Virus record (IMG/VR): IMGVR_UViG_3300046003_007892 | Span: 1-64,000 of that record | Length of the DNA stretch: 64,000 nt | Strand: one strand, 5' to 3' | Part shown: one piece after another, positions 25,932 to 43,703 of the stretch | Layout of the letters: the number at the start of each line of letters is the position of its first letter | Numbering within the stretch: the stretch's first letter is position 1 | Notes under the pieces: generated by a model | Seen by the model: the letters and a program-made list of their open reading frames with translations, nothing else | Told to the model about the DNA's origin: nothing | Databases searched by the model: none | Program-made: the position numbers and the translations under genes

Positions 25932-26357
25932 CTATCGGAGGCCGAGAGCCTTCATGAGGGTCAGGACGGCTTCCCCCCGCACGGTGTCGGGGTCATCCTT
26001 GGGGTCCGCGTAGGGGGACAGGACCAACAGGGCTTGCTCGATGTCCATCGACCGCTTGGGGTTGGACAGAACCGAGTTGCAGACGGCGGCCAGGACGGCA
26101 CTGCGGGCGGAATCGACGAGGTTCGAAGCGATCATGGCCGTGCCGATTTCTCGACTGAACTTCGGGTCCTTCATGGAATCGTAAGCCTCGCCCGCCATGC
26201 GCTGCAAGGCACCCAGCGAAGGAACGTCCGGGACGTCTTCGAAGTATCCGTCCTCGTCGGAGGCCTTACAAATCCTGGCCAGATCGGGCAGGATTTCGAT
26301 CAGCGAGACCGAAAGGGAAACCGAAACAGGGATGCGATTCTTGGACATGTCGGACAT
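25932..26357 (-). CDS. Hypothetical protein
   Basis: AGGAG SD before ATG 26357. Confidence 0.65.
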   Translation of the reverse strand: MSDMSKNRIPVSVSLSVSLIEILPDLARICKASDEDGYFEDVPDVPSLGALQRMAGEAYDSMKDPKFSREIGTAMIASNLVDSARSAVLAAVCNSVLSNPKRSMDIEQALLVLSPYADPKDDPDTVRGEAVLTLMKALGLR

Positions 26358-26411
26358 TGAGTTCTCCTTCAAACCCAAAATAGGGCAAAGGGGGAACTTG
26401 TCAAGCAAATA

Positions 26412-26606
26412 TCACCAGAGCAGCATGAGCTTGAGTGCCTGTGCTGCCGTCACATCTTTGACTGTCCAGTAATCTGCGACTCCGGGCCATATGATCAGGG
26501 TGTCGTCAAACGGTATGTCGAGATGGTGAAACAGTTTACGGATGACGGAAAGCTCTCCGTATAGGTCCATGACCGTTATGCCGTCCGAGTCAAGCTTGAT
26601 ATCCAT
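26412..26606 (-). CDS. Small hypothetical protein
   Basis: TTGAAA-N17-TATACT promoter (26613-26641) 6 nt before ATG. Confidence 0.55.
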   Translation of the reverse strand: MDIKLDSDGITVMDLYGELSVIRKLFHHLDIPFDDTLIIWPGVADYWTVKDVTAAQALKLMLLW

Positions 26607-26643
26607 CTTGACAGTATAGACTATCGAGAGATGAATTTCAAAA

Positions 26644-26719
26644 TGGCGTCCCGAGCAGGGCTCGAACCTGCGACCTCATCCTTCGGAGGGATGTGCTCTT
26701 CCAACTGAGCTACCGGGAC
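26644..26719 (-). tRNA. tRNA-Arg(CCG)
   Basis: Cloverleaf, loop CTCCGAA, CCA encoded. Confidence 0.92.
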
Positions 26720-26743
26720 TTGAGGCGTCACCCTCGAAAAGAA

Positions 26744-26819
26744 TGGATGGGGCGGTAGGGGTCGAACCCACAACCGACGCATTCAAAGTGCGTTGCTCTA
26801 CCAGTTAAGCTACGCCCCA
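26744..26819 (-). tRNA. tRNA-Gln(TTG)
   Basis: loop CTTTGAA, U1-A72, CCA encoded. Confidence 0.92.
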
Positions 26820-26843
26820 CCAGGGGTGGTCCTGAGCACTTTG

Positions 26844-26916
26844 CTGGGGAGATAGGTCTCGAACCTATAACCGCCCGATTCAGAGTCGGGTGCTCCACCA
26901 GTTAAGCTACTCCCCA
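26844..26916 (-). tRNA. tRNA-Gln(CTG), no encoded CCA
   Basis: loop CTCTGAA, U1-A72; 17-bp flanking inverted repeat. Confidence 0.9.
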
Positions 26917-26937
26917 GCAAAATGCTCAGGACCGAAA

Positions 26938-27012
26938 TGGCGATCACGACGGGTTTCGAACCCGTGGCCTGCGCATCGACAGTGCGCTGCTCTACCCCTG
27001 AGCTACGTGACC
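26938..27012 (-). tRNA. tRNA-Asp(GTC)
   Basis: loop CTGTCGA, CCA encoded. Confidence 0.9.
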
Positions 27013-27013
27013 G

Positions 27014-27089
27014 TGGCGACCTTGACGAGGTTCGAACTCGCGACATTCGGATAGACAATCCGACGCTCTACCAGTTGAGCTACAAGGCC
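27014..27089 (-). tRNA. tRNA-Asp(GTC)
   Basis: loop TTGTCTA (U37), CCA encoded. Confidence 0.88.
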
Positions 27090-27116
27090 GTCGTAGATGA
27101 AGAACAATGTCCTTTG

Positions 27117-27190
27117 CTGGGATGGAGGGATTCGAACCCCCGACCCTCGGTTTCGTAGACCGATGCTCTAATCCGCTGAGCTACACCCCA
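27117..27190 (-). tRNA. tRNA-Arg(ACG), no encoded CCA
   Basis: loop CTACGAA; 12-bp flanking inverted repeat. Confidence 0.9.
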
Positions 27191-27215
27191 GCAAAGGACA
27201 TTCCTCTTTTAGTAA

Positions 27216-27291
27216 TGGCGTAGCTAGGAGGGCTCGAACCTCCAACCTTCAGATTCGTAATCTGATGCTCTTCCAGTTGAGCTATAGCTAC
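27216..27291 (-). tRNA. tRNA-Arg(ACG)
   Basis: loop TTACGAA, CCA encoded. Confidence 0.92.
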
Positions 27292-27406
27292 ATTGTTCCT
27301 TTCGTGAACAAAACTTGTGATGGTTGCCGGGAGGTCGGTGCCCAGATTGGCACTACACCGACTTCCCGACTGTTCTGCCCGGTGCCGCTGCGCAGCGACT
27401 TTGGGC

Positions 27407-27442
27407 AAAGAAAAACCCGCCCCGGCCTGAGCCGAAGCGGGT
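27407..27442 (-). terminator. Intrinsic terminator (attenuator) upstream of tRNA array 1
   Basis: ACCCGC-TTCGGC-TCAG-GCCGGG-GCGGGT followed by TTTTCTTT. Confidence 0.8.
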
Positions 27443-27479
27443 GTTTCTAATCCTGTAGACCTAGACCGAGGATTTGGCC

Positions 27480-27587
27480 TTAGCAGCCGCCTCCTTGATC
27501 ACCATTGTCCACACGACGAGAAACCCCGCAACCGCGTTGGCGGTCCCGTTGCTGTCGATCTCGGCGTTGGTTGATGGTGTAGGTCAT
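27480..27587 (-). CDS. Leader peptide of tRNA array 1 (35 aa, MTYTINQRRDRQQRDRQRGCGVSRRVDNGDQGGGC)
   Basis: 8 nt after TATAAATA; 12 consecutive Gln/Arg/Asp codons matching array tRNAs; antiterminator pairing. Confidence 0.8.
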   Translation of the reverse strand: MTYTINQRRDRQQRDRQRGCGVSRRVDNGDQGGGC

Positions 27588-27595
27588 GATGTAAC

Positions 27596-27603
27596 TATTT
27601 ATA
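27596..27603 (-). promoter_or_regulatory. Late promoter TATAAATA (full T4 consensus)
   Basis: Exact match, drives leader 1. Confidence 0.7.
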
Positions 27604-27622
27604 CAGATGGTTCGAAAAGACG

Positions 27623-27940
27623 TCAATAAGAAAATTTCTGCCGGGCGATTTTTCTGCGGCGAAGTATGGCGTGGGCCTCGACGGGGTGCGGAAACGCTGG
27701 CATCCCTTCCCTTCTCACAAATCGAATCTTTCCTTCGGGGGTCAGGTAGAAAAAGTTCGCGCCGCCACGCCTGACAAGTGCAGCCTCGGTCAACTTTTTC
27801 AATGCAGCAAGGATAGTCTCGGCAGTCAGACGATGTTTCCCCAACGCGTCGATTACCTTCTTCAACTCTCCTACGGACGTGGCTCTCGAATCATGAAGTG
27901 CGTGCCCGACAATACGCTGATTTTTTGATAGCTTAATCAT
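27623..27940 (-). CDS. Small basic winged-helix-like protein
   Basis: ILAALKKLTEAALV...FYLTPEG. Confidence 0.5.
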   Translation of the reverse strand: MIKLSKNQRIVGHALHDSRATSVGELKKVIDALGKHRLTAETILAALKKLTEAALVRRGGANFFYLTPEGKIRFVRREGMPAFPHPVEAHAILRRRKIARQKFSY

Positions 27941-27978
27941 GACTACATAGTAGATGACGGAACGGTCGTAGTCGAAAT

Positions 27979-28461
27979 TTAGATTGGACGAATCGCCCCC
28001 TCGGGGTTCACGATCATGATCTCGCCTCGGGGACCATCGGACATCCAGCCCTCGGCGCCAGTCTCGGCCAAATGTGCTGCCACGTCCATGTGCCCGTGCT
28101 CGGGGTCTCCAGTCAGTGCGAAGGCGAGTTCGTAATAGGTCCGGGCGTCGGTGATGTCATAGAGGGTCAGGTCGCGGGTGGTCTCGTAGGAGAGAACCCG
28201 TTTACGGCCCTTATAGTAGGAATCGCCCTGGTTCGCCCATCCGGCCCATTCCTTGGCCGCGCCGTCGTCAATGGTGAACCACGCGCATGGCCCGTTTGGG
28301 ATTTCGAAGTCGGTTGGGTTGTCGGTGCCGTGATGAAGGACGGTCCCAGCAGGCAAGACTTTCTTGGGGAAGCGGCTCAGTGGCCAGCGGTCATCAGGCG
28401 CGCGCTTCTCTTCGTCGAAGGCATCCAAGGGGTCTTTGAAGGCGATCTCGCTGTATCTCAT
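27979..28461 (-). CDS. Putative packaged ART-like protein
   Basis: MRYSEI; LPAGTVLHHGT...AWFT...A..WA...GEIMI. Confidence 0.5.
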   Translation of the reverse strand: MRYSEIAFKDPLDAFDEEKRAPDDRWPLSRFPKKVLPAGTVLHHGTDNPTDFEIPNGPCAWFTIDDGAAKEWAGWANQGDSYYKGRKRVLSYETTRDLTLYDITDARTYYELAFALTGDPEHGHMDVAAHLAETGAEGWMSDGPRGEIMIVNPEGAIRPI

Positions 28462-28673
28462 TGGCCGACTCTGGTTCGACCCTTGTTGCCGGGCTCAACG
28501 GCCGGAAGCTGATACGTGCTGTCGTTCATTAGCGCACAGACATGGAAGGCCACGCTCTCTGAGGCGAACTCCGCGATGGGAATGCGGGACAGGCTCGGGT
28601 TGTCGATGATACCCGCCGCCACGCCGGGGCGAAGGTCGTTGTTCTTGGCCAGGATGACGGAGTATCTTTTCAT
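28458..28673 (-). CDS. Small hypothetical protein
   Basis: ATGA coupling. Confidence 0.55.
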   Translation of the reverse strand: MKRYSVILAKNNDLRPGVAAGIIDNPSLSRIPIAEFASESVAFHVCALMNDSTYQLPAVEPGNKGRTRVGQ

Positions 28674-28680
28674 CAGATAT

Positions 28681-29016
28681 TTAGGTTGGGCGGAAGGTCT
28701 CGTCCATCCATGCCAAGGTAATATCCCGCGAAGCCTTGTCGGCGTCTCCGGTCACCGTGATCTCTTCGACCACGAGCTTGGATTCTGGTCCCCATATTTC
28801 CCAGACGGTATCGTCGGCGGTGGCTTCCCGGAAGACTGCTGCGATTTTCCAGTCCGATGCCTCGATCTCCACGTCGTGCGCCCCACGAGGGTCCCTCCTG
28901 GAATCGATTTTAAGAGTGAACTCGACGCCGTTCGAGCGAAAGCCGAACCCTCGTCCGTTGGCTACTCCCATCGCCAAGGCGAAAGCGGTTCGCACAATAA
29001 TCCTGGCGTCGATCAT
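28681..29016 (-). CDS. Hypothetical protein
   Basis: Coupled ORF; ends RDITLAW like neighbour. Confidence 0.6.
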   Translation of the reverse strand: MIDARIIVRTAFALAMGVANGRGFGFRSNGVEFTLKIDSRRDPRGAHDVEIEASDWKIAAVFREATADDTVWEIWGPESKLVVEEITVTGDADKASRDITLAWMDETFRPT

Positions 29017-29426
29017 TCGGCTTCCATCTCGGCGATCATCGGGAAGAGGGTGATGTCGCGCTCAAATCGGTCCCGGTCCCCGTCGAACTTCAAGATCATC
29101 AGGGGACCGTGGAAGGTCGTGGTTCCGTCCGACTGCGCCCGCATTCCATACAGGGTTCTGCGCCCCATTCTCGGGACGGTAAGGAGGGCGTCGTGCGGCC
29201 CAGCCGTCCAGCCGTCGAATGGGATGCCAAGACCGAGCGTCGCTTGCCAGTAGAACTGCCCCTGGTCGGTGTCGATGCTTCGCGACAACCGAACCCGCAG
29301 GCCAGATCGGGAATTGTTTTTCAGAACCTCAGCATGGTAGTCGCCCCCGCTGGCCTCGAACCACGCACTGGGCTGATTCCAGACATGCTGCCACACGCGG
29401 GCAATGAGGCGCCCCATCGGGCTCAC
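29013..29426 (-). CDS. Hypothetical protein
   Basis: Coupled ORF; ends FERDITLF. Confidence 0.6.
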   Translation of the reverse strand: MSPMGRLIARVWQHVWNQPSAWFEASGGDYHAEVLKNNSRSGLRVRLSRSIDTDQGQFYWQATLGLGIPFDGWTAGPHDALLTVPRMGRRTLYGMRAQSDGTTTFHGPLMILKFDGDRDRFERDITLFPMIAEMEAE

Positions 29427-30274
29427 AGGAGTCGCATACCGCCCATCGACGCCGCCATGGCTTCGGCGAGAAGGCTGTCGAACTCCGACTTGGCGCCGGG
29501 GTCGGTGTCGAGACGGGACATGATCTCGAACGCCTTGTTGACCTTGCGGGTCTCATCGTTCTCTTCGAGGTTGGGCCCGTTGAAGTAGAAGGTCGAGCCC
29601 TCGTCGTCGATGTCATAGGCGGACGCGAAACCGAGGTCTTCGCGTTTGCACGAGAACAGATCGGACGGGCGGAACCCCTGCGCGTTGACCTTGTTCAGCG
29701 GGTTCTCGGGGTCGTCGTTCCACGCCAGCTTGACCTCGACAGCTTCGCGGGCAGTCGGGGTGCAGACGATTCCGTGGTAGTCCGACGAACTCACGCCGCC
29801 CTTGTAGGACATCGAAACCCGCCAGCGACGTTCGCCGGGCCCGGCCTTGGGATACGGCTTGCCCTCGGGGTCGCACTCGGACATCAGAACTCCGTCTTCG
29901 TTGACGTGTTCGCCATCGGCGTCCTGAAGAACCGTGCCGCTGAGATAGACGCTGCCGCTATCGTATTCGTGCAGCTTGAGGACGATGTCGTCCAAGCGGA
30001 TGAGGCGATTGATTTCCTCGCGGGCGTCGGGGAGGACGGGCGTGAGGCGAACGGCCTTGGGCCAGTGACGACCCAGAACAGTTTCCAGCTTGGCGGCGGT
30101 GCGGGCGCGGAAGCGGTTCCAGTCCTTGGCGATACGCTGCTGACGCTCTTCCTGATCGCGATTGCGGCGACCATCGGCGGCCAATGACAGGGTCTCGCCC
30201 AGATCGTAGAAGAGGACACTGCCCTCGACTGCGGCGGCGAGGATGAGGCGGGTGGCGGCTGTGTAGTTGCGCAT
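29423..30274 (-). CDS. Hypothetical protein
   Basis: TTGACA-N16-TAATGG promoter (30281-30308) 6 nt before ATG. Confidence 0.7.
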   Translation of the reverse strand: MRNYTAATRLILAAAVEGSVLFYDLGETLSLAADGRRNRDQEERQQRIAKDWNRFRARTAAKLETVLGRHWPKAVRLTPVLPDAREEINRLIRLDDIVLKLHEYDSGSVYLSGTVLQDADGEHVNEDGVLMSECDPEGKPYPKAGPGERRWRVSMSYKGGVSSSDYHGIVCTPTAREAVEVKLAWNDDPENPLNKVNAQGFRPSDLFSCKREDLGFASAYDIDDEGSTFYFNGPNLEENDETRKVNKAFEIMSRLDTDPGAKSEFDSLLAEAMAASMGGMRLL

Positions 30275-30313
30275 ACGAGACCATTATCTCGTATCCCGAA
30301 CATGTCAACTATT

Positions 30314-30835
30314 TTAGCGCGCCCAACAGGCGTCCACGAAGGCAACGTCATCAGCCATCAAGGGTTTCTGGTCCTCGCCGAGCGGGATAGCTCGAACTTG
30401 AACGGGACCCATGAACCTCTGGACGGCAGCCGCGATCTTGGCGGTCATGGCTTCCAGGGGTTCGCCATACTGCTCCTGAACGGCCAGCCGAATGTCGTCA
30501 TCCGACATCCCCTCGTAGTCACCGTCCGTCATCCAAATCTCGCCGTAGCAATGCGTGCGGGACATCTGGAGCCGGTAGGCTTCGTTGTGGATGTCGAGAC
30601 CGGCGTGATCGCAAATGACGTCATGGGCAAGACAGCACCCGTCGCCGATGACGATCTGACCGTCTTTCATCAGAACGCCAGCGGCGCCCTGTGGATATCG
30701 GGCATTCCATTCCGCCTTGGTCGGCGCGAGGCAGATGACGGTCTTGCGATTATCACCGGGATTCAGGATTCGGTCCTGGTACACGATAGCCTCGCCAAGG
30801 ATACTCTCGACGATGATGTCAGCGTAGGTTTTCAT
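30314..30835 (-). CDS. Putative internal head protein
   Basis: MKTYADIIVES N-terminus, near-identical to that of 18922. Confidence 0.65.
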   Translation of the reverse strand: MKTYADIIVESILGEAIVYQDRILNPGDNRKTVICLAPTKAEWNARYPQGAAGVLMKDGQIVIGDGCCLAHDVICDHAGLDIHNEAYRLQMSRTHCYGEIWMTDGDYEGMSDDDIRLAVQEQYGEPLEAMTAKIAAAVQRFMGPVQVRAIPLGEDQKPLMADDVAFVDACWAR

Positions 30836-31692
30836 TTATTGGCCACGATGTGCTCGACGAAAGAAGTTATATGGGGCTTGAGCGGAGTCCCCAGTACCCA
30901 AGAAGCGAAGCAGTCGGCCCAGAACTCACCAAAGTTGTTTCTCGAATAGTCTCTCGGGAATGCGCCGGGGTCATTTTGAAGACACCAGTTGTATCGGTCG
31001 TTCAGGTGCACTCGGCAACCAGGGAAGCGGTACTCAAAACGATGGCCGAATTCGTGAATGATAGCGTGGATAAGGAACGGGTCGTTGGTGCTCGGCACAA
31101 GCCAAACATTATCTCCGGCGTAGTCGTAGTAACCGCCAACGCCGTGCCGGGTATGCTTGACACTAACGTCAACCGACATGAGCCAGCCCACCCCCTTGGC
31201 CTCCATGTAGCGACGCGCCGCATTGAAGCATCGCACCATCGCGTTTTTGTACGACTCGGAAATGCCATCACCATAGAAGATTATCTTAGTCTGACCAACG
31301 TCCACGGTCTCGACTTCTACGTTTGGGTCATTCGGGTCCAGGTCATTGAAGTAATCTGTGCCCTTAACGTATGGGAAGTTTACGGCCGGACGGTTCTTGC
31401 CTCCACGGCTCGTGATCTCGCGTCCCGCGCTATTCTGACCAGTGTTCTGACCAGTGTTCTGACCAACGTTGGAATAGTTTGAACCGCCATATTCTACGCC
31501 GTTGACAGTGACTGACCCCAACGCGCCGATAGATATGTTTACTCCGCCAACCTGGAACGATTGAACACTGCTTTCGCCACCAGTATGAGCGTATTCATTG
31601 AGGTGCTCGTCTGTGCAACAGCTACAACGAATTTCCGGTGCCTGGGACGTTTCGACGATGGCTAGGGATTTTCGTATATCGGAGTTGTCCAT
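30832..31692 (-). CDS. Putative packaged zinc metallopeptidase (lethal-factor-like fold)
   Basis: IIHEFGHRFE...YSRNNFGEFWADCF; TAAATA 31697-31702, 4 nt before ATG. Confidence 0.7.
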   Translation of the reverse strand: MDNSDIRKSLAIVETSQAPEIRCSCCTDEHLNEYAHTGGESSVQSFQVGGVNISIGALGSVTVNGVEYGGSNYSNVGQNTGQNTGQNSAGREITSRGGKNRPAVNFPYVKGTDYFNDLDPNDPNVEVETVDVGQTKIIFYGDGISESYKNAMVRCFNAARRYMEAKGVGWLMSVDVSVKHTRHGVGGYYDYAGDNVWLVPSTNDPFLIHAIIHEFGHRFEYRFPGCRVHLNDRYNWCLQNDPGAFPRDYSRNNFGEFWADCFASWVLGTPLKPHITSFVEHIVANK

Positions 31693-31696
31693 CCGA

Positions 31697-31723
31697 TATT
31701 TATCACGGCTTGGTGGCTAAATA
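31697..31723. promoter_or_regulatory. Divergent late promoters TAAATA
   Basis: Each 4 nt before ATG (31692 minus, 31728 plus). Confidence 0.7.
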
Positions 31724-31727
31724 TTCG

Positions 31728-32324
31728 ATGCGAGAGTTCCTCAACATCCTGGCCGAAAACAGAGCCCAACCCTTTCCTGGTCTCACCCCGGAGTTCCTCG
31801 CCAAGCTGCGCGAGATTCGACACCAGTGCCGCATCGACAACGGCGGGGGCGGGTCATGCCACCTCGTCTCGGAATGGCTCGATGACGAATACGGATGGGA
31901 CCGTGTCAGCGGCACCTACACGTCCGCCGACTATCAGGACGTCGCTATCACGGGCCACCTCTGGAACCTCTTGCCCGATAACAGCATACTCGATGCAACG
32001 GCCGATCAGACCGGCGAGGGGCACGACATCCGAGTCATCCACCCCTCTGACCCCGAGTACCATCGCTATCGCCCCGAGTGGTATCCAGATTTCCATCCCG
32101 ATCACGAGGATTTCGAGAAATTTTGGGCTGAATATCAGCCGCTCAGTTTCCCCCACTACGACGGGAGCAAATATCCGAAGTTTTCTGGCGAGGACGACTA
32201 CACGGGTCAGAACCGTCTGCGGGACGAGCGCGGTGACTATTGGTGGTCAACCGACAAGGAACAACTGGCTCGCTATCACGACGAGCAGCAGCGCGAATAC
32301 GATTGGAAGCGCGGACAGTTCTAG
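31728..32324 (+). CDS. Putative packaged papain/transglutaminase-fold protein
   Basis: MREFLNILAE; GGSCHLVSEWL, GHLWN, ILDATADQ triad pattern. Confidence 0.6.
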   Translation: MREFLNILAENRAQPFPGLTPEFLAKLREIRHQCRIDNGGGGSCHLVSEWLDDEYGWDRVSGTYTSADYQDVAITGHLWNLLPDNSILDATADQTGEGHDIRVIHPSDPEYHRYRPEWYPDFHPDHEDFEKFWAEYQPLSFPHYDGSKYPKFSGEDDYTGQNRLRDERGDYWWSTDKEQLARYHDEQQREYDWKRGQF

Positions 32325-32782
32325 TAGTAGTCGTACCCGCTGCCACCGCTGCTGTTGTTCGATTCCCTCATCGAGCCCCTGACCAGCGCGATGAGCCACA
32401 TGACAATCCAACCCGCGACGTAGGCGACAAAGGTCGCGACGAGCCCCGCGAAAAACCATCCCCAGAATTTCGGATAGATGGTCACGAGTCGAATGAACCC
32501 GACGATTGCGCCGATCACCACGGCTCCGACGACGGGAGCCATGAGGTTTAGTCGCCCCCATTTACCCTCGTCACCGGAATCGACAATGAAGTCGGCGAAG
32601 CGGGCGACCGGATTGACGAACGGTTGTTTGGGCTCTGGTTCCTCGACCACGGCGGGCGGCTGGAAGTTATCGTCCATCGAAACCATCGACGTGGGGGCAG
32701 GCTCAGCGACAATGACGTCCCGACCACGTTCATCCTTGGAGAAGACGAACCCTTCTTGCTTGCGCGATGCTTTTCCCATCAC
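32321..32782 (-). CDS. Membrane protein
   Basis: Two hydrophobic C-terminal helices. Confidence 0.7.
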   Translation of the reverse strand: MMGKASRKQEGFVFSKDERGRDVIVAEPAPTSMVSMDDNFQPPAVVEEPEPKQPFVNPVARFADFIVDSGDEGKWGRLNLMAPVVGAVVIGAIVGFIRLVTIYPKFWGWFFAGLVATFVAYVAGWIVMWLIALVRGSMRESNNSSGGSGYDYY

Positions 32783-33169
32783 CTGCCACTATACCGTGCA
32801 GTTTTTTCGGTCAACCGATATCTTCGCGAAACGAAGAACGGCCCCCGAAGGTGCGCACCAACGGAGGCCGTCACAACCGACGCGGACGTGCTGCGGTCAC
32901 CAAGCGGCAGAGATCAGAAGCCTATCCGATCAAGCCCATGACGTGTCTGCAAGAGCGCGCCGCCCCCAACAGAATCCGCCTGATTGTGCATGGAGCCCAC
33001 CAGCCTAAGCGGGCCTCCCTTACGCGGGCAAACAATCCCGTTCCACCTAAGCCCGTTAAAGGCTGACCCTTGAGGATGACCGTAGTCTCCTGTCGGACTG
33101 ACATCTCGCCAGGGCGGTGCTGCAAAACACTTTCGCCGGTCTGGGTGGCCACCCTCGCCGACGAAATAA

Positions 33170-33703
33170 TCAGAGTCCGAGTTCTACTATGGCGGCGTGG
33201 AACTCCGCAATACGTTTCTTGTATGGCTCAAGGGCAATCGTCGGGTAACCGGCCAGTGCCGCCTTGGCGACCTGTTTCTCGGTGAAGAGGCCGACCCAGC
33301 CAAGGAAGTTGAGGTGATCGTATTGTTCTTCCAAGATGCCAAGCTCATAGCCGATATCGAAGAAAGCTTGATCGCCATCGAATGGAAATACCGGATGGCG
33401 GTCTGGAACCTCAACGATATATCGGCAGTCCGACACGTAGATGCCGTCGTTGAAGATCATGCGGAAGACGTCGCGGTCGATTTCGTTGTTGAAAAAGAAC
33501 CGAGCCCCCACCCAGGTGTAGTCTTTACCAAAGACCCATCCGCATAGTTCGTGGGTTTTCGTCCATTCATGGACGGGCTCACGTGTATAGTCGAAATACG
33601 GGTAGCCCATATTTGACAGGAATTGCGCCGCCGTCGAGCCCATGTTTGGGCGGTGGGCTTCCTGAATAGCGGACTTCATTTGCGACAAGGGTGGCAGGCT
33701 CAC
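33170..33703 (-). CDS. Hypothetical protein
   Basis: GTGA overlap start; FFFNNEIDRDVFRM. Confidence 0.6.
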   Translation of the reverse strand: MSLPPLSQMKSAIQEAHRPNMGSTAAQFLSNMGYPYFDYTREPVHEWTKTHELCGWVFGKDYTWVGARFFFNNEIDRDVFRMIFNDGIYVSDCRYIVEVPDRHPVFPFDGDQAFFDIGYELGILEEQYDHLNFLGWVGLFTEKQVAKAALAGYPTIALEPYKKRIAEFHAAIVELGL

Positions 33704-34209
33704 AGCCGACGCCCCCGAAGGTCCATGACCTGATAGCCGAGCAGACTGGCTTTCGCGGCGCATTCTTCCGAACGAATGCCCGCCCAACCGAAATCGTAGT
33801 CGATGACGCTGACCTCGGAACCCAACGCCTTCATGTCATCGTAGAAATCGTCTAGCTCCTGGCCGGTGGGCTCGAACACCCAGCCAGATTTTCGCAGCGG
33901 CGCCGCGAACGGAATATTTTTCCTGATAAGGGGCCCCAGCATAAGGGCCCAACGGTTCTCGAATCGCTCGGCGACCTCCTGGGACTGGAAAAAGAACTCC
34001 GAATTGAACTGGTAGTATCCGGGTTCGAGTTCCTCGGCCGCGCTCATCGCTTGCTGCATTGCCGGGCTCCGCAGCGTGACGACATACCAACCAGCCGCAT
34101 TGAGGGCATGGACCCCCAACTGCCCGCGAAGCCTCGGGGCTATACCGCCCCGCTGCTCCAGGTAGGCATTGATGGCGTCGTTGCCGAATGGAACGGTCGA
34201 GCGGCTCAT
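33700..34209 (-). CDS. Hypothetical protein
   Basis: Coupled ORF. Confidence 0.65.
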   Translation of the reverse strand: MSRSTVPFGNDAINAYLEQRGGIAPRLRGQLGVHALNAAGWYVVTLRSPAMQQAMSAAEELEPGYYQFNSEFFFQSQEVAERFENRWALMLGPLIRKNIPFAAPLRKSGWVFEPTGQELDDFYDDMKALGSEVSVIDYDFGWAGIRSEECAAKASLLGYQVMDLRGRRL

Positions 34210-34502
34210 TTGCCAGCTATGTCGAAGATGGAAATCATTTCGCCTTGGGGGAGATCACGGGTCACGGTGCGATTCAAGACCTCCTCAATGGCCCGTTCCA
34301 TGGCGAAGTTGGTCTCGTAGACGGACGTGCTCCGGTTGGGCTGACCGTCCAGCCATTTCTTGGCTTCGATCAAGACGGCGGTGACGTCGCTCGCGTAGGT
34401 GATGAGGTCATGGATATCCCCGGCCTCTTCGGGCGTCGTGTCCGGGCTCGCGGCGAACCCGGACAGGCGCGCGACCACGGCAGAGATGTCGTTCTTGGCC
34501 AT
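34206..34502 (-). CDS. Hypothetical protein
   Basis: TGATG coupling (MAKNDIS). Confidence 0.6.
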   Translation of the reverse strand: MAKNDISAVVARLSGFAASPDTTPEEAGDIHDLITYASDVTAVLIEAKKWLDGQPNRSTSVYETNFAMERAIEEVLNRTVTRDLPQGEMISIFDIAGK

Positions 34503-34687
34503 CAGGATTTCATCCTCTGTTCGAACGCGTTCAGGTCGGCTTCCAGTTTCGCCATCCGCTCTTCGGACGTCAGCATAGGCGGAACCACAAGATTGGGCTC
34601 GTAGGTTTGTCGCACCCATGGGGACCGGACAGGAGGGCGGTTCTGCGAACGCTTCACCGCGAGGTTCATCATCGCGAGACTGGTCAT
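34502..34687 (-). CDS. Small hypothetical protein
   Basis: Fills operon gap, coupled. Confidence 0.5.
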   Translation of the reverse strand: MTSLAMMNLAVKRSQNRPPVRSPWVRQTYEPNLVVPPMLTSEERMAKLEADLNAFEQRMKS

Positions 34688-34688
34688 G

Positions 34689-35036
34689 TCAGGTATCCAC
34701 GTTGTAGCGGAGTTTGAACTCGACGGCGTCCTTGGCGTCCTCGAAGGCGATCACGTAACGGTCTTCGATCTCGTTACCCAGGTTGTCCTCGGGTTCCAGA
34801 GTCTGATATTCCGCCATGACGAAATCACCCTTGAGGATTTCTTTCGCGTGGAGTTCGCCGATCATCGCCGAGTATCCGCCATGGTAGACGATCACGCCGT
34901 GCACTAGCGTCCAACCGAGGGCCGCCATGTGCAAAACCGCTTGAAGATCGCCGCGCGCCTCGGATAGTTCCCGCACGGCGGTGCGAGTTCTGGCGAGTTC
35001 GTGCTCGCAGTCCGAAAGGGCGGCGGTACGTCTCAT
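34689..35036 (-). CDS. Small protein, FxDxxDAxxFKL family
   Basis: ends AFEDAKDAVEFKLRY; ATGA start. Confidence 0.65.
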   Translation of the reverse strand: MRRTAALSDCEHELARTRTAVRELSEARGDLQAVLHMAALGWTLVHGVIVYHGGYSAMIGELHAKEILKGDFVMAEYQTLEPEDNLGNEIEDRYVIAFEDAKDAVEFKLRYNVDT

Positions 35037-35260
35037 CGCTGACGAATCACAAAGACTTCGGAGGCCGAGTCCTGCCAGACGTAGTAGTGCTCGCCGGGCG
35101 TGTCGCGCATCTTCTCGCGGCCGAACCACTGATAGAGGTCCGTGCCGTCGAAGCGATAGAGCTTCAGTTCCGTCCAGGAGTTCTTCGGCATCTGATTGTA
35201 GGCCGCCTGTTCGAGTTCAGGAACATGAGTGCGGGCGGCGTCTTCGACTTCAGTAAACAT
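35033..35260 (-). CDS. Small hypothetical protein
   Basis: GGAG SD; TTGACG-N16-TATCTC promoter 35282-35309. Confidence 0.6.
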   Translation of the reverse strand: MFTEVEDAARTHVPELEQAAYNQMPKNSWTELKLYRFDGTDLYQWFGREKMRDTPGEHYYVWQDSASEVFVIRQR

Positions 35261-35320
35261 GGGAGTCTCCATTTCACGACAGAGATACCACAAGTTGGTT
35301 TACCGTCAAGTAAATAGGGT

Positions 35321-35884
35321 ATGCGCTACTTCAACATCTTTGAATCAAAATCGGCTCCGCTCTACCACGGAACCGATCTCCTGTTGTTGGCTGCCATCGT
35401 GCAGGGGAACTTTCTCCACAAAGGCATCAACTGGGGGAGGCCTGGGGAACCCAACGGGCCTCGCCTGACCCGCAACTACGGCACGGCATACTCCTTTGCC
35501 AACGACAACGAGTTTGGCATGGGCGGGGTCCTAGTGCTCGACCAGATGAAGATCGCGCAGCGGTATCGCATTCAACCCTACGCCGACGTGGATGCCTCTG
35601 GAGAGCGTTGGGTTAACGAATTTGAAGAGGTGCCGATCACGAGTGAGATCGGCCCGCTGAATCGATATCTGATTTCGATCAATGCTGACCCGGCCCACAT
35701 CCAGACGGTGATGGCGGACGAAGACCTCATGGGGCACCGCTGCGCGGAAGCCAGCCATTGCATTTCGGAAACGTTCGCGACCTACGAGGAGTGCCACGAC
35801 GCCCTCGATCATCTCCTGAAACACCCGATGCTCAACCGGATGGTCCCGCGAGGCCGAGATACGCCGCTGGGTTGGCGGGTCTAA
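35321..35884 (+). CDS. Putative packaged ADP-ribosyltransferase-like protein
   Basis: MRYFNIFES; LYHGT, RLTR, EFEE; TAAATA 35311-35316, 4 nt before ATG. Confidence 0.6.
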   Translation: MRYFNIFESKSAPLYHGTDLLLLAAIVQGNFLHKGINWGRPGEPNGPRLTRNYGTAYSFANDNEFGMGGVLVLDQMKIAQRYRIQPYADVDASGERWVNEFEEVPITSEIGPLNRYLISINADPAHIQTVMADEDLMGHRCAEASHCISETFATYEECHDALDHLLKHPMLNRMVPRGRDTPLGWRV

Positions 35885-35886
35885 TG

Positions 35887-35920
35887 CAAAACGCCCTCCC
35901 GGCCTGACCGGAAGGGCGTC
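35887..35920 (-). terminator. Intrinsic terminator after large ncRNA
   Basis: GACGCCCTTCCGG-TCAGG-CCGGGAGGGCGT-TTTG. Confidence 0.75.
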
Positions 35921-35924
35921 ACCA

Positions 35925-36868: not shown

Positions 36869-36873
36869 CCTTC

Positions 36874-36902
36874 TACCTACTCGGGACTGCGTTGCCTGTC
36901 AA
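36874..36902 (-). promoter_or_regulatory. Sigma70-like promoter of the large ncRNA
   Basis: TTTTTGC-TTGACA-N17-TAGGTA. Confidence 0.6.
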
Positions 36903-36919
36903 GCAAAAACTTTCGACCA

Positions 36920-37521: not shown

Positions 37522-37525
37522 GGGT

Positions 37526-40740: not shown

Positions 40741-40829
40741 TGGCTCCTAGTTGAGGAATCGAACCTCACTCGTTAGCCTCGCGGCCTACAGGGTAACAAC
40801 CTGCCCGCACACCTTGTGCGTTACTAGGA
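40741..40829 (-). tRNA. tRNA-Asn(GTT) with atypical long variable arm
   Basis: loop TTGTTAC, U1-A72, GGCC-GCGA-GGCT variable hairpin, CCA encoded. Confidence 0.75.
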
Positions 40830-40861
40830 ATAGCGATGCCCCGAAAGGCATCAGAGATAAG

Positions 40862-41173
40862 CTGGGCAGGCAGGGCTCGAACCTGCGACATTTCGATTCG
40901 CTTGTTCCCATGTTCCCATGGGCGCGGACTATATCTTCACCCTCAGCATTACCTGTTAGGGGCTGGGTGCTGTTTGGTCGTTATCGGGTTTGGCTCCCTC
41001 AGACCTAGTCTCTACACCTTCCGAAATACTCAAGGCCTTCTTTCGGCTCGGCTCGGGATTGCCACCGCCATTACGCGAGAGGTTTCCCCGAATTCTCCCA
41101 GATTTTCAACCTCAGTTTCCCGAGGAAGTGTCCATTGAACAGTCGAACGCTCTACCAACTGAGCTACAACCCA
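40862..41173 (-). tRNA. tRNA-Asn(GTT) split by group I intron (exons 41138-41173, 40862-40898), no CCA
   Basis: Exons join to a canonical 73-nt cloverleaf with loop CT-GTT-AA. Confidence 0.9.
40899..41137 (-). mobile_element. Group I intron, 239 nt, no ORF
   Basis: P GAATTCGGGGAAAC, Q AATCCCGAGC, R GTAGAGACTA, S AAGATATAGTCC; P1 with U.G at 5' splice site; terminal G. Confidence 0.92.
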
Positions 41174-41326
41174 GCTTATCTCTGACTTGGCGTCCCCCCT
41201 CCCGCCATCACCTGTTGGTGTCTGCGCGGTCGGAGGAACATGGTTGCCCCCGACCATGAGAAACCTTGCTCTCATGGTCGGGAGGGTTTTCTTGCCCTCC
41301 CCCGTAAAGGGGGTCCGGCACGAAGA

Positions 41327-41557
41327 TTAAACGTCGGTCGCCTTCCTGTGATTCTTGAAATCGCGTCCGCGTTCCTGAATGACGGTTGCGTCGAGTTCGG
41401 TTCCGAAGGCCTCAAGGACCGTCCAACCTCGGCTCCACTTGCCGTCTTCCTTGAGATCAACGAGGCCGTCCTGGATGGCCCGTTCAGACGGAATCCAGGA
41501 GACTTGACGTGCGCCGTTGCGCTCCAGTGTGCATTGTTTTACAGTCTCCCTTCTCAT
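41327..41557 (-). CDS. Small hypothetical protein within tRNA array
   Basis: AAGGA SD, 76 aa. Confidence 0.55.
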   Translation of the reverse strand: MRRETVKQCTLERNGARQVSWIPSERAIQDGLVDLKEDGKWSRGWTVLEAFGTELDATVIQERGRDFKNHRKATDV

Positions 41558-41601
41558 CTGATAGTCCTTTCGTAAGACTTCACCACCATGGTGAAGAATA
41601 G

Positions 41602-41676
41602 TGGAGGCGCAGGGTGGTCTCGAACCACCGACATGCAGAATATGAATCTGCCGCTCTACCCCTGAGCTACTGCGCC
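41602..41676 (-). tRNA. tRNA-Met(CAT), probably elongator (Ile2 not excluded)
   Basis: loop TTCATAT, G1-C72, CCA encoded. Confidence 0.85.
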
Positions 41677-41729
41677 GTATTCCTTTTGCTGCCGCCCCAG
41701 CATCGAAACACTGGGACGGCGGCGAAACT

Positions 41730-41893
41730 TGGTGGACGTGCCAGGAATCGAACCCGGACAGTTGAGTTTCACCCCAACCGCATTACCCGGACGGACCCCG
41801 CCTCTGACTGTCTCCGGGTTCGCGACCCCTCGGACATCCTCGGACGAGGCACTCCGCCTCTATCAAACTCAACGGGTATCCCCGTCTACGCCC
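41730..41893 (-). ncRNA. 164-nt tRNA/tmRNA-like RNA with Ala identity (G3.U70, A73, CCA)
   Basis: GGGCGT/ACGTCC-A-CCA acceptor, T-arm CCGGG-TTCGATT-CCTGG, 8-bp stem enclosing ~95-nt insert. Confidence 0.6.
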
Positions 41894-41898
41894 GTAAA

Positions 41899-41974
41899 TG
41901 GTAGGCCCGGACGGGTTCGAACCGCCGACATTCGGTGTGTAAAACCGACGCTCTCCCAACTGAGCTACAGGCCC
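41899..41974 (-). tRNA. tRNA-Val(TAC)
   Basis: loop TTTACAC, CCA encoded. Confidence 0.92.
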
Positions 41975-42087
41975 TCAGGTCACCCTGAAAATCTCCCAGT
42001 GATTACCCCACCGCTTGGTCGGCAACCTCCGCCGCTGGGAGCGGCCTCTCTGACTGTCGCCATCCTGGCGCCGGTCGTATTCTTGTG

Positions 42088-42164
42088 TGGTCGGCGAAGG
42101 TGGGTTCGAACCACCGACCTTTCGATTATCGGTCGAATGCTCTAACCAACTGAGCTACTCGCCG
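42088..42164 (-). tRNA. tRNA-Ile(GAT)
   Basis: loop CCGATAA (C33), CCA encoded. Confidence 0.88.
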
Positions 42165-42205
42165 TCACACAAACTGAGCTTTGATGCTCCTGACCTCGCC
42201 ACGTC

Positions 42206-42270
42206 TGGCTGTCCGGCGAGGGTTTCGAACCCTCCGCGCCTTGCCTGTCGGCCACCTAGGGACCAGACAG
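42206..42270 (-). ncRNA. 65-nt tRNA mimic lacking an anticodon arm
   Basis: 9-bp CTGTCTGGT/GCCGGACAG stem, T-arm GAGGG-TTCGAAA-CCCTC, CCA. Confidence 0.5.
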
Positions 42271-42345
42271 TCAGGAACATCTCTGCTAAGAACCCTTCCG
42301 CTTCTTCCCTCGCAGCTTACGAGGGCGTCCCCTTGGGATTCGAAA

Positions 42346-42410
42346 TGGCGGGGCGCCCGGATTTGACCCGGAGATCGTTCGCTTCAAGCGGGGCATCGCA
42401 ACCTAGCCCC
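42346..42410 (-). pseudogene. Degenerate tRNA-like element
   Basis: CCA end, T-arm with GTCAAAT loop, truncated D-arm, weak stem around TGA. Confidence 0.4.
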
Positions 42411-42452
42411 TAAGCTTGTGACCTTCCCCCTACGGGGCACACACCGATGAAA

Positions 42453-42527
42453 TGGTAGTCGAGGGTGGGATTGAACCACCGACCTTCGCCTTATCAAGAC
42501 GCTGCTCTCCCGCTGAGCTACTCGACC
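42453..42527 (-). tRNA. tRNA-Ile(GAT)
   Basis: loop TTGATAA, CCA encoded. Confidence 0.88.
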
Positions 42528-42532
42528 GCACG

Positions 42533-42607
42533 TGGTAGGTCTGGAGGGTTTCGCACCCCCGACCTTTGCAATGTCAATGCAACGCTCTCCTCCTGAGCTA
42601 CAGACCC
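42533..42607 (-). tRNA. tRNA-Val(GAC)
   Basis: loop TTGACAT, T-loop TGCGAAA, CCA encoded. Confidence 0.88.
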
Positions 42608-42702
42608 ATACCACATGGAAACTATCCCCCGACGACCCACAGTGCAGGCCGTCTATTCAAGACCCCGAGGGATGGGGTCCCGGAAGCGCGAGGCTTCCGA
42701 AA

Positions 42703-42777
42703 TGGTGGCCACAGGTGGTCTCGAACCACCGACACCCGCATTTTCAGTGCGGTGCTCTACCCCTGAGCTACATGGCC
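42703..42777 (-). tRNA. tRNA-Phe(GAA)
   Basis: loop CTGAAAA, CCA encoded. Confidence 0.92.
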
Positions 42778-42779
42778 GT

Positions 42780-43070
42780 AGACATAATCCTGGTCACCCT
42801 TACCGCTCACCATTGGGCCTCCACCTGGGGGCTTCAACGCCAAGCCGGGGGATTGAACCCCGACAGATCATGTCCGTATCGGAACACGCCAACAGACCAC
42901 CAGCGAAGAAGGGATTCGAACCCTTCTGCCTCCCCCTTCGCCACCGTTACTGCCGAAACAGCCAAGGCATCGAACCTTGTCGGGTTTGGGTGCGCCGTGC
43001 AACGCTCTTGGTCAGTTCAAGGCCTTTGGACCGCCTGTAGGCGATCTGTTGGCGAGTTCCGATAGTCTTC
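42780..43070 (-). ncRNA. Structured RNA candidate between tRNA-Tyr and tRNA-Phe
   Basis: 22-bp stem (43043-43064 with 42877-42898) enclosing two T-loop hairpins; third T-loop hairpin 42846-42862. Confidence 0.55.
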
Positions 43071-43082
43071 ATATGTATTCAC

Positions 43083-43166
43083 TGGTCGGCAGAGTAGGAT
43101 TCGAACCTACGCGCCTTTCAGAGCGGGGTTACAGTCCGCCGGTTTCAACCACTCACCCATCTGCCG
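43083..43166 (-). tRNA. tRNA-Tyr(GTA)
   Basis: loop CTGTAAC, long variable arm, CCA encoded. Confidence 0.9.
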
Positions 43167-43187
43167 ATAAGTGAATACATACTGCGT

Positions 43188-43262
43188 TGGCAGGAGAGGA
43201 GGGATTTGAACCCCCGACCTTCGGTTTTGGAGACCGCTGCTCTACCACTGAGCTACACTCCT
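43188..43262 (-). tRNA. tRNA-Trp(CCA)
   Basis: loop CTCCAAA, CCA encoded. Confidence 0.92.
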
Positions 43263-43349: not shown

Positions 43350-43512
43350 CAACTTTTTTCGATTTTGTTGAATATTTTCGAGGACTTACTCAACTGTACT
43401 CAACGTATACTTCGTGCGTTCTTCGCCTTTACTTGGCGGATACTTGCTGGTTCTTTGTGACTTCAAACTGCCAAGGCATTTGTTGTCGGGGTCCCTGTTG
43501 GGTTTCGGCCAT

Positions 43513-43548
43513 AGAAAAAGGCCGCTCCGGTTTTCCGGGGCGGCCTTT
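43513..43548 (-). terminator. Intrinsic terminator (attenuator) upstream of tRNA array 2
   Basis: AAAGGCCGCCCCGG-AAAA-CCGGAGCGGCC-TTTTTCT. Confidence 0.85.
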
Positions 43549-43572
43549 GTATCTCTGGAGCGGGGTGGGTGT

Positions 43573-43668
43573 TTAGATCGACACCCCATCACGTCCATGC
43601 ACAAAAGCCGCGCCCGGAATATTCCAGACGACGTTGTTGTTCACAAACATGATATAGTTCTTGCTCAT
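43573..43668 (-). CDS. Leader peptide of tRNA array 2 (31 aa, MSKNYIMFVNNNVVWNIPGAAFVHGRDGVSI)
   Basis: 6 nt after TAAATA; 14 consecutive codons for N/Y/I/M/F/V/W matching array tRNAs; 17-bp antiterminator. Confidence 0.85.
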   Translation of the reverse strand: MSKNYIMFVNNNVVWNIPGAAFVHGRDGVSI

Positions 43669-43674
43669 CACTCT

Positions 43675-43680
43675 TATTTA
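43675..43680 (-). promoter_or_regulatory. Late promoter TAAATA
   Basis: GCTAAATA, drives leader 2. Confidence 0.65.
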
Positions 43681-43703
43681 GCAAACTGGCTCGCGGCAGT
43701 CAA

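Follow-up and report, generated by a model that had tools for sequence, protein, structure and literature searches.

A small coding stretch made up only of Gln, Arg and Asp codons was found just upstream of the Gln/Arg/Asp tRNA genes of a phage, where it is followed by a predicted intrinsic terminator with a competing alternative fold. The analysis was carried out on a stretch of 64,000 nucleotides (positions 1 to 64,000 of IMG/VR record IMGVR_UViG_3300046003_007892), hereafter called the window. The arrangement looks like a classic ribosome-stalling attenuator that has been re-used so that the phage makes these tRNAs only when they run short. With the sequence evidence in hand, and without any experimental support as yet, we put the probability of this reading at about 0.8. 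Such a control of tRNA genes was not found in the full-text literature searched, and to our knowledge this would be the first leader-peptide attenuator known to regulate tRNA genes.

Anatomy of the leaders and their codon match

All the elements of the first leader are on the minus strand. The promoter contains a -35 element TTGACG (27626-27621) and a -10 element TATAAATA (27603-27596), and the pattern TTGAC-N-TAAATA occurs only three times in the window, two of which are at the two leaders described here. The ATG (27587-27585) lies 8 nt after the -10 element, and the mRNA is therefore inferred to be leaderless or nearly so. No Shine-Dalgarno sequence precedes the ATG, and translation depends on this inferred leaderless start. 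The leader ORF (27587..27480) has 35 codons plus stop and reads MTYTIN-QRRDRQQRDRQR-GCGVSRRVDNGDQGGGC. It is followed by an intrinsic terminator with a 12-bp core (27442-27415) containing 9 G-C pairs and a T-run, which extends to a 17-bp stem (27448-27431 pairing with 27426-27409) with the T-run reaching 27407. The regulated genes are seven tRNAs at 27291-26644, Arg-ACG (two copies), Asp-GTC (two copies), Gln-CTG, Gln-TTG and Arg-CCG, which were found by ARAGORN and scored 63-69 bits with the Rfam tRNA model. Every item listed in the preliminary description, which was made from the sequence alone and proposed a tRNA-sensing attenuator, was confirmed. No sigma-70-like promoter was found between the terminator and the first tRNA, although only sigma-70-type promoters could be scanned and phage-specific promoters could not.

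The regulatory run of 12 codons (27569-27534) holds only CAA, CAG, CGC, CGA, CGG, GAT and GAC, each of which is read by a tRNA of the array, and its first 8 codons already include one codon for each of the five anticodon species. This is the longest run of array-1-cognate codons in all six frames of the window, the next best being 7 codons and the expected number 6e-5, and chance is excluded. When the leaders were scored with the codon or amino acid sets of about 100-165 other arrays, the own set of each leader ranked first with z of 6.1-8.9, and for leader 1 the z was 6.1 at codon level and 7.2 at amino acid level.

The second instance, upstream of array 2, was also confirmed and is an independent match. 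Attenuator 2 (43512..43703, minus strand) contains a promoter (43703-43675), a leader ORF (43668-43573) reading MSK NYIMFVNNNVVWNI PGAAFVHGRDGVSI, and a 14-codon run NYIMFVNNNVVWNI (43659-43618) that matches the Trp/Tyr/Phe/Val/Ile/Met/Asn tRNAs and is the longest such run in the window (next best 8, expected 6e-6). Array 2 (40741..43262, minus strand) contains Trp, Tyr, Phe, Val-GAC, two Ile-GAT, Val-TAC, Met, an intron-containing Asn-GTT and an 89-nt Asn-GTT-like tRNA. A weak promoter-like site (43349-43321) is present downstream of its terminator. Neither run contains a codon from the set of the other array.

Predicted alternative folds of the leader RNAs

The leader RNAs are unusually structured, with z=-5.5 for leader 1 (-86.8 kcal/mol for the whole leader, against shuffles) and z=-5.4 for leader 2, and the folds give the four-region layout of protector, antiterminator and terminator in the order known from classical attenuators. 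In leader 1, the protector (regions 1:2) is formed by pairing of the run (27570-27540) with 27535-27509 in two helices of 11 bp each. The antiterminator (regions 2:3) is formed by pairing of 27529-27507 with 27460-27437, and it encloses a hairpin (27500-27464) that holds the stop codon, and it sequesters ACCCGC of the 5' arm of the terminator. The preliminary description had given this pairing as 11 bp with one bulge, and it was found to be longer, at 21 bp. In leader 2, the protector (43654-43623 with 43618-43587), the antiterminator (43619-43581 with 43572-43533) and the terminator (43548-43535 with 43530-43517) are arranged similarly.

When a ribosome was masked at run codon 4 of leader 1, only 4 of 12 terminator pairs remained in the MFE structure, and 0 of 14 remained in leader 2 with the ribosome at run codons 1-10. 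With the ribosome at the stop codon, or with no ribosome, the terminator formed with 12/12 pairs in leader 1 and 13/14 in leader 2. Shuffled spacers mimicked the stalled-state result in only 3.3% and 1.25% of cases. However, in equilibrium folding, stalls at the last third of the run restored the terminator, and for several phiCbK-like leaders the terminator won whatever the stall position. The loss of the terminator across the phiCbK-like leaders was inconsistent and is not counted as support, and a kinetic, co-transcriptional argument is therefore needed.

Recurrence in other phages and the phiCbK-like family

The same design, a short ORF with a run matching the array, then a terminator and then the array, recurs in unrelated phages. 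A blastn search of array 1 against isolated phages matched tRNA genes only, but it led to Tunturiibacter phage Tunturi_5, which has one leader (MKT-LCLSSYCLSSSLSLS...) before Leu/Cys/Tyr/Ser tRNAs and a second before Gln/Gly/Thr/Pro/His/Ala/Phe tRNAs. The design was also seen in IMG/VR contigs (labelled here L099, L076/L115, L098, L186, L203 and L172), at two arrays of Caulobacter phage RB23, and in all the phiCbK-like Caulobacter and Brevundimonas phages examined. Weaker survey candidates were rejected on inspection, as they lay inside an HNH gene (L094) or at the end of an HU-like gene (L075), had no start within the locus (L074) or no terminator (L110), or were long ORFs (L194 and L051). 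Among bacterial tRNA clusters from GTDB genomes, 0 of 71 met the criteria, against 5 of 165 IMG/VR clusters, a difference in the expected direction but not significant on its own.

In a search for related loci, the neighbouring 105-aa and 406-aa proteins returned only the window's own contig and one near-identical contig, and a homology search with the 406-aa protein found a widespread half-length domain whose best contig has no tRNAs. In Sinorhizobium phage Phosso, the closest isolate by baseplate protein, the 50 kb next to the baseplate gene hold no tRNAs. Leader 1 has no diverged homologue, and the only other copy differs by 1 base in 12 kb. Its helices therefore rest on folding and shuffles alone, without covariation support.

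Leader 2, on the other hand, is homologous to the phiCbK leader. The RB23 leader is conserved in 12 phiCbK-like phages, and window leader 2 aligns with them from ATGAGCAAG through region 2 to the terminator. Across window leader 2 and 7 family members, 6 of the 13 terminator pairs showed compensatory changes with 1/104 non-canonical cells, and 7 of 20 antiterminator pairs and 4 of 12 protector pairs were compensatory. CcrBL9 and CcrSC show a coordinated three-site change (region 2 G>A, region 3 C>U and region 4 G>A) that keeps both 2:3 and 3:4 paired. Indels inside the run are multiples of 3 and substitutions stay within the set of the array, which gives only indirect support for translation of the leader. 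A pattern spanning the leader start and run found only the window's two contigs and three phiCbK-like isolates in IMG/VR, and a single metagenome scan with a region-2 pattern gave 100 mostly chance hits and one further family member (L379).

The family also offers a natural swap. The run of phiCbK, YRQFVRQIQVVRNIR, precedes an array of Phe, Val, Ile, Ile, Val, Gln, Gln and, in its close relatives, Arg. The homologous window leader 2 keeps the F, V, I, N and Y codons and replaces exactly the Arg and Gln codons with Ile, Met, Asn and Trp codons (for example CGG>TGG). Correspondingly, array 2 lacks Arg and Gln tRNAs and has Met, Asn and Trp tRNAs, and the Arg and Gln tRNAs sit in array 1 behind leader 1. 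The match is not perfect in every family member, as the phiCbK leader has an Asn codon without an Asn tRNA called in that array, and Brevundimonas leaders have F and R codons without annotated Phe or Arg tRNAs.

Proposed mechanism, alternatives and related systems

These findings together support a ribosome-mediated transcription attenuator placed in front of a phage tRNA array. In the proposed mechanism, a host-type promoter starts an almost leaderless mRNA and a ribosome begins at once to translate its 35-codon ORF, in which codons 7-18 are exclusively those read by the seven downstream tRNAs. If charged tRNA-Gln, -Arg and -Asp are plentiful, the ribosome would run through, the run would re-pair with region 2, and the terminator would stop transcription before the tRNAs. 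If any of them is scarce, the ribosome would stall in the run, leaving region 2 free to pair with the 5' arm of the terminator as it emerges, and RNA polymerase would read on into the array. The new tRNAs would relieve the stall and close a negative-feedback loop, and the two arrays, each with its own ‘bar-coded’ leader, would be separate regulons. Translation of the leader, the leaderless start, stalling and regulated read-through are inferred, and the trigger could be host tRNA depletion by defence nucleases, host shut-off or codon demand late in infection.

A wider possibility, which we consider as likely as not, is that phage tRNA arrays are built as self-regulating modules switched on by stalling when any of their tRNAs is depleted, as an inducible counter-measure to tRNA-cleaving host immunity and to host tRNA decay. 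On this reading the modules move between unrelated phages and the bar code is re-written whenever tRNA genes are gained, lost or moved between arrays. Why phages carry tRNA genes has been debated for about 50 years, with codon compensation, host tRNA decay and escape from anticodon nucleases as the explanations on offer, and such a leader would show that at least some phages measure decoding capacity codon by codon. It could also give synthetic biology a compact, programmable sensor of individual tRNA pools.

Among the alternatives, the one that survives best, although unlikely, is that the same attenuator responds to general translation stress or amino acid starvation, or sets a temporal programme during infection. 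A stalled ribosome cannot tell a missing tRNA from an uncharged one, classical attenuators of the same layout sense amino acid supply, the structural results fit either signal, and stalling would also follow amino acid starvation, which extra tRNA would not cure. Against this, the regulated products are the tRNAs themselves, the run lists each anticodon species and not just amino acids (CAA and CAG, and CGC/CGA and CGG here; ACA/ACC/ACG and GCA/GCC/GCG in Tunturi_5), and run codons track tRNA gene content across homologous leaders, as tRNA-level sensing predicts.

It is less likely still that the ORF is an ordinary small gene for an Arg/Gln/Asp-rich protein, followed by an ordinary terminator, with the tRNAs driven by an unrecognised phage-specific promoter and the codon match incidental. 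Homologous leaders are indeed annotated as hypothetical protein and terminator in GenBank records, and only sigma-70-type promoters could be scanned. However, each run lies directly upstream of its own array with the low expectations given above, the swap control ranks the own set first, the design recurs in unrelated phages, the 2:3 pairing shows compensatory changes, and in the family the RNA after the run is conserved while the reading frame is not, window leader 2 being shifted by 1 nt relative to phiCbK. Equally improbable is that leader translation acts by another route or with opposite logic, for example by preventing Rho-dependent termination or RNase attack so that tRNA sufficiency turns the array on, or by stalling that triggers mRNA cleavage. 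Translation-transcription coupling and Rho polarity are general in bacteria, and the stop codon lies about 30 nt before the terminator stem, so the ribosome does not reach the terminator itself. However, a strong intrinsic terminator and a conserved, covarying antiterminator competing for its 5' arm are exactly what the classical logic needs and are unnecessary for a Rho model, and masking the run frees region 2 and abolishes the terminator. A T-box-like riboswitch binding tRNA anticodons directly is the least likely, since, although codons matching the tRNAs lie in a structured leader before a terminator/antiterminator pair, cmscan of 26000-44500 at E<=1 listed only tRNAs, a group I intron and chance-level hits, no conserved T-box sequence was seen, and the region holds 12-15 consecutive in-frame codons after an ATG with indels in multiples of 3 and not a single specifier codon in a loop.

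The closest known systems are the leader-peptide attenuators of amino acid operons (trp, his, leu, thr, pheA and the multi-amino-acid ilvGMEDA leader) and of pheST (Phe-tRNA synthetase), which share the short ORF with regulatory codons, the four RNA regions, the stalled ribosome covering region 1, termination as the default state and, as in ilv and thr, the sensing of several amino acids by one leader. Here the regulated genes are tRNAs, not biosynthetic enzymes or synthetases, a departure of scope and not of mechanism by which the output would directly remove the stall. In addition, the run enumerates every anticodon species of the array (up to 7-10 amino acids), the mRNA appears leaderless, the element is phage-borne, and no similarity to the Rfam leader families was found. 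T-box riboswitches also sense tRNA status and switch between terminator and antiterminator, but they bind one uncharged tRNA directly without translation and control synthetase or amino acid genes. The likely selective context is the counter-defence by phage tRNAs against tRNA-cleaving immunity (PARIS/AriB, retron effectors and PrrC-type anticodon nucleases), in which phage tRNAs rescue infection when host tRNAs are cleaved (PMC10264068, PMC11464382, PMC11555353). Those studies concern the tRNAs themselves, and the eLife paper searched does not mention attenuators, leaders or terminators.

The leader family of phiCbK-like phages (Dolichocephalovirinae) is unannotated, being recorded in GenBank as hypothetical protein (for example RB23 gp135 and Karma gp083) plus predicted rho-independent terminator, and the phiCbK genome paper reports no RNA elements other than tRNAs (PMC3556154). 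Small hypothetical proteins in front of phage tRNA arrays could be re-labelled on this basis. Leader 1 has the same architecture as this family but aligns only poorly, sharing only the MTY start and a GAT..GGAGGC..GC tail with CcrColossus, so its homology is uncertain. By its baseplate protein the window phage is a Rak2/Atu_ph07-like jumbo myovirus and not a phiCbK-like siphovirus, and the module was probably exchanged horizontally. Window leader 2 shares with the family the ATGAGCAAG..TAT start, region 2, GCATGG and the terminator, and the downstream arrays share the core Phe, Val-GAC, Ile-GAT, Ile-GAT, Val.

Two leader regions and their match to the downstream tRNA arrays

All the features of the first leader were located on the minus strand. 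A host-type promoter is present with TTGACG at 27626-27621 and TATAAATA at 27603-27596, and an ATG at 27587, which lies 8 nt after the -10, opens a 35-codon ORF (27587-27480) that reads MTYTIN-QRRDRQQRDRQR-GCGVSRRVDNGDQGGGC. This is followed by a strong intrinsic terminator having a core stem at 27442-27415 with 12 pairs, of which 9 are G-C, an extended stem formed by 27448-27431 and 27426-27409, and then a T-run. A perfect Shine-Dalgarno-like AAGGAGG was noticed at 27490-27496 (minus strand), inside the 3' part of leader ORF 1 and in the hairpin that holds the stop codon, but no start codon follows it at a suitable distance. At 115 nt after the terminator, seven tRNA genes are found at 27291-26644 (Arg-ACG x2, Asp-GTC x2, Gln-CTG, Gln-TTG and Arg-CCG), which scored 63-69 bits with Rfam. 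The 12-codon run (27569-27534) uses CAA, CAG, CGC, CGA, CGG, GAT and GAC and nothing else, so every anticodon species of the array is represented. The preliminary description, which had claimed a Gln/Arg/Asp leader peptide and a terminator ahead of a Gln/Arg/Asp tRNA array, was correct in both its coordinates and its description.

The possibility that this match arose by chance was checked and is excluded. In all six frames of the 64-kb window, the longest run of array-1-cognate codons is this one, with 12 codons as compared with seven in the next best and an expectation of 6e-5. Similarly, the longest run of array-2-cognate codons (14 codons; next best 8; 6e-6 expected) lies 356 nt upstream of array 2 in a second small ORF, MSK-NYIMFVNNNVVWNI-PGAAFVHGRDGVSI (43668-43573). 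Array 2 encodes Trp, Tyr, Phe, Val, Ile, Met and Asn tRNAs, and all seven amino acids, and only these, make up that run. When each upstream region was scored with the codon or amino-acid sets of about 100-165 other tRNA arrays, the window's own sets ranked first, with z of 6.1 and 7.7 at the codon level and 7.2 and 8.9 at the amino-acid level. In addition, the motif TTGAC-N-TAAATA occurs three times in the window, and two of these are the two leaders; the only other such promoter-like site is at 47667-47696 on the plus strand.

Some further features of array 2 were noticed on the minus strand. A tRNA-Asn(GTT) gene (40860-41200), which is not called by ARAGORN, is interrupted in its anticodon loop by a group I intron at 40906-41155 (Rfam RF00028, 50.1 bits, exactly at the gathering score). 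An 89-nt tRNA at 40741-40829 has a long variable arm (type II shape) but the anticodon GTT (Asn); its best alternative in Rfam is tRNA-Sec at 25.5 bits, and its charging identity is unclear. Similarly long Asn-GTT tRNAs (84-89 nt) occur in CcrColossus and Brevundimonas phages. The long spacers inside the array (42778-43082, 42165-42452 and 41677-41898) contain several T-arm/acceptor-like pieces (GGTTCGAATCC..., ...CCA) called by neither ARAGORN nor Rfam, which could be degenerate tRNAs, split tRNAs or processing signals. Furthermore, an HNH endonuclease gene at 40122-40697 (phrog_35854, E=3e-38) abuts array 2 and a small ORF sits inside the array at about 41330-41565, which together with the group I intron suggests that the array is a hotspot for mobile elements.

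Alternative folds of the leader RNAs

Both leader RNAs were predicted to fold far better than shuffled sequences (z=-5.5 and -5.4 for leaders 1 and 2, respectively). In leader 1, the run (27570-27540) pairs with 27535-27509 to form the protector (regions 1:2), whereas 27529-27507 can instead pair with 27460-27437. This 21-bp antiterminator (2:3) encloses a hairpin that carries the stop codon and takes the ACCCGC of the 5' arm of the terminator (3:4). Leader 2 has the same layout, with the protector formed by 43654-43623 and 43618-43587, the antiterminator by 43619-43581 and 43572-43533, and the terminator by 43548-43535 and 43530-43517.

The effect of a parked ribosome on these folds was monitored by masking the RNA to 12 nt past the A-site codon. 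With the ribosome early in the run, only 4 of 12 terminator pairs remained in leader 1 and 0 of 14 in leader 2 (run codons 1-10). When the ribosome was at the stop codon or absent, 12 of 12 and 13 of 14 pairs were formed, respectively. Dinucleotide shuffles of the spacer reproduced the loss of the terminator in 3.3% (leader 1) and 1.25% (leader 2) of cases, and in 0.25% and 6% for two leaders of Tunturiibacter phage Tunturi_5. The first eight codons of run 1, which leave region 2 uncovered, already contain one codon for each of the five anticodon species. However, stalls at the last codons of the runs restored the terminator at equilibrium, and the argument is partly kinetic, as it is in classical attenuators.

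Recurrence in other phages and the family of leader 2

Because the collections contain no close relative of the window phage other than a near-identical contig, we looked at other phage tRNA arrays. In Tunturi_5, the unannotated ORF MKT-LCLSSYCLSSSLSLS-DGWDLRTGRDADMI is followed by a terminator and then by Leu, Cys, Leu, Leu, Tyr, Leu, Ser, Ser and Ser tRNAs. A second ORF, rich in F, A, P, T, G and Q, precedes a terminator and Gln, Gln, Gly, Thr x3, Pro, His, Ala x3 and Phe tRNAs, and it uses ACA/ACC/ACG, GCA/GCC/GCG, CAA/CAG and CCA/CCG, one codon per anticodon. In samples of IMG/VR contigs fetched with a generic three-T-arm pattern, further clear cases were found in the contigs L099, L076/L115, L098, L186, L203 and L172, with GC content ranging from 33% to 42%. 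About 3% of the arrays (5 of 165) met strict criteria, and roughly 5-7% when the sub-threshold cases were included, whereas none of 71 bacterial tRNA clusters fetched with the same pattern met them; the direction is as expected, but the difference is not significant on its own.

Caulobacter phage RB23 was found to have two such leaders. The first, gp135 (MTRIHTTLTTAKPASTGALTLASWPASSKPLLRHSAVLA), lies before Pro, Thr, Lys, Leu x3, His, Ala, Ser x3 and Trp tRNAs. The second, MSKSY-RQFVRQIQFVRVNR-AGRSRMDDGGTRV, lies before Val, Ile, Val, Gln, Asn, Arg and Phe tRNAs and has a TTGACA-17-TATAAG promoter with the ATG 7 nt after the -10. This second leader is conserved at 69-78% DNA identity in phiCbK, Karma, Magneto, Swift, Rogue, CcrBL10, BL57, CcrBL9, CcrSC, CcrColossus and Brevundimonas phages. 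Window leader 2 aligns with this family from ATGAGCAAG..TAT through GTCGTC, region 2 (CCGGGCG.GGC) and GCATGG to the terminator, and the arrays share the core Phe, Val-GAC, Ile-GAT, Ile-GAT, Val. Leader 1 lacks diverged homologues. The baseplate wedge protein of the window (911-4249, minus strand) is 43% identical to that of Sinorhizobium phage Phosso and 40% to that of Agrobacterium phage Atu_ph07. The window therefore comes from a Rak2/Atu_ph07-like jumbo myovirus, probably of an alphaproteobacterium, yet it shares a tRNA-leader module with phiCbK-like siphoviruses.

When the pairs were counted over leader 2 plus seven family members, the terminator had 13 pairs, of which 6 showed compensatory changes, with 1 of 104 cells non-canonical. 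The antiterminator had 20 pairs, 7 with compensatory changes and 47 of 160 cells non-canonical, and the protector had 12 pairs, 4 with compensatory changes and 25 of 96 cells non-canonical; some of the non-canonical cells come from a 1-nt register shift. Equilibrium folding of several phiCbK-like leaders does not by itself favour the antiterminator. In CcrBL9 and CcrSC, three mutually pairing positions changed together (region 2 G>A, region 3 C>U and region 4 G>A), and both alternative helices stay intact. Furthermore, indels within the run are multiples of three, and downstream of the run window leader 2 is shifted by one nucleotide relative to phiCbK while the RNA stays similar. The run is therefore constrained as codons, and the rest as RNA.

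The comparison of the phiCbK leader and window leader 2 codon by codon amounted to a natural swap experiment. The phiCbK leader reads M S K T Y R Q F V R Q I Q V V R N I, and window leader 2 reads M S K N Y I M F V N N N V V W N I. The F, V, I, N and Y codons are kept, and precisely the Arg and Gln codons are replaced, for example CGG>TGG. Array 2 has no Arg or Gln tRNAs but has Met, Asn and Trp, and the Arg and Gln tRNAs sit in array 1, behind leader 1, whose run is made of Q, R and D. The tracking is not perfect, as phiCbK keeps one Asn codon without a called Asn tRNA, and Brevundimonas leaders have F and R codons without annotated Phe or Arg tRNAs. In leader A of the Caulobacter phages, a Trp codon is present where the array has tRNA-Trp (RB23) and absent where it has not (phiCbK and Karma). 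In addition, the phiCbK-like array B (L225:13395-13480 and L379:1295-1381, L379 being a further family member from a metagenome) starts with a tRNA-Tyr(GTA) that is unannotated in RB23 and was reported absent from this phage group in the 2012 genome paper, and which matches the conserved Tyr codon at leader position 5.

Proposed mechanism and relation to known attenuators

We propose that this element is a leader-peptide transcription attenuator re-used for tRNA genes. Fast translation of the run would lead to protector plus terminator, and the array would be off. A stall on any cognate codon would lead to the antiterminator and read-through, the tRNAs would be made, the stall relieved and the array turned off again. 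In the absence of experimental data, translation from a leaderless start, stalling, regulated read-through and the trigger are inferred, whereas the proposal as a whole rests on the anatomy, statistics, alternative folds, recurrence, homology, and covariation in the family of leader 2. The likely context is depletion of host tRNAs by immunity nucleases or during infection, against which phage tRNAs are known to help (PMC10264068, PMC11464382, PMC11555353).

In this proposal, the element works like the trp, his, leu, thr and ilv attenuators and it satisfies their structural criteria, but it matches no Rfam leader or T-box model and its targets are tRNAs. No report of leader peptides or attenuators before phage tRNA arrays was found in full-text literature searches. 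The phiCbK genome paper states that Rfam found no RNA elements other than tRNAs and does not use the words "attenuator" or "leader" (PMC3556154), and the eLife paper on phage tRNAs does not mention them either. GenBank records label the family members as "hypothetical protein" and "terminator".

Phage-specific promoters cannot be excluded. A weak promoter-like site, TTGACT-17-TAGGTT, is present at 43321-43349 (minus strand) between terminator 2 and tRNA-Trp. It shares TTGACTGCC with the leader-2 promoter and could give array 2 a basal, attenuator-independent expression. In phiCbK-like phages, a conserved mini-ORF with a strong Shine-Dalgarno sequence (GGAGATC..ATG AAC AAC GGN GGN stop, peptide MNNGG or MSNGG) lies just after the leader terminator and before the first tRNA (L231:3230-3275, L232:3185-3215, L379:1350-1385 and homologues), and it may be a second translational checkpoint.
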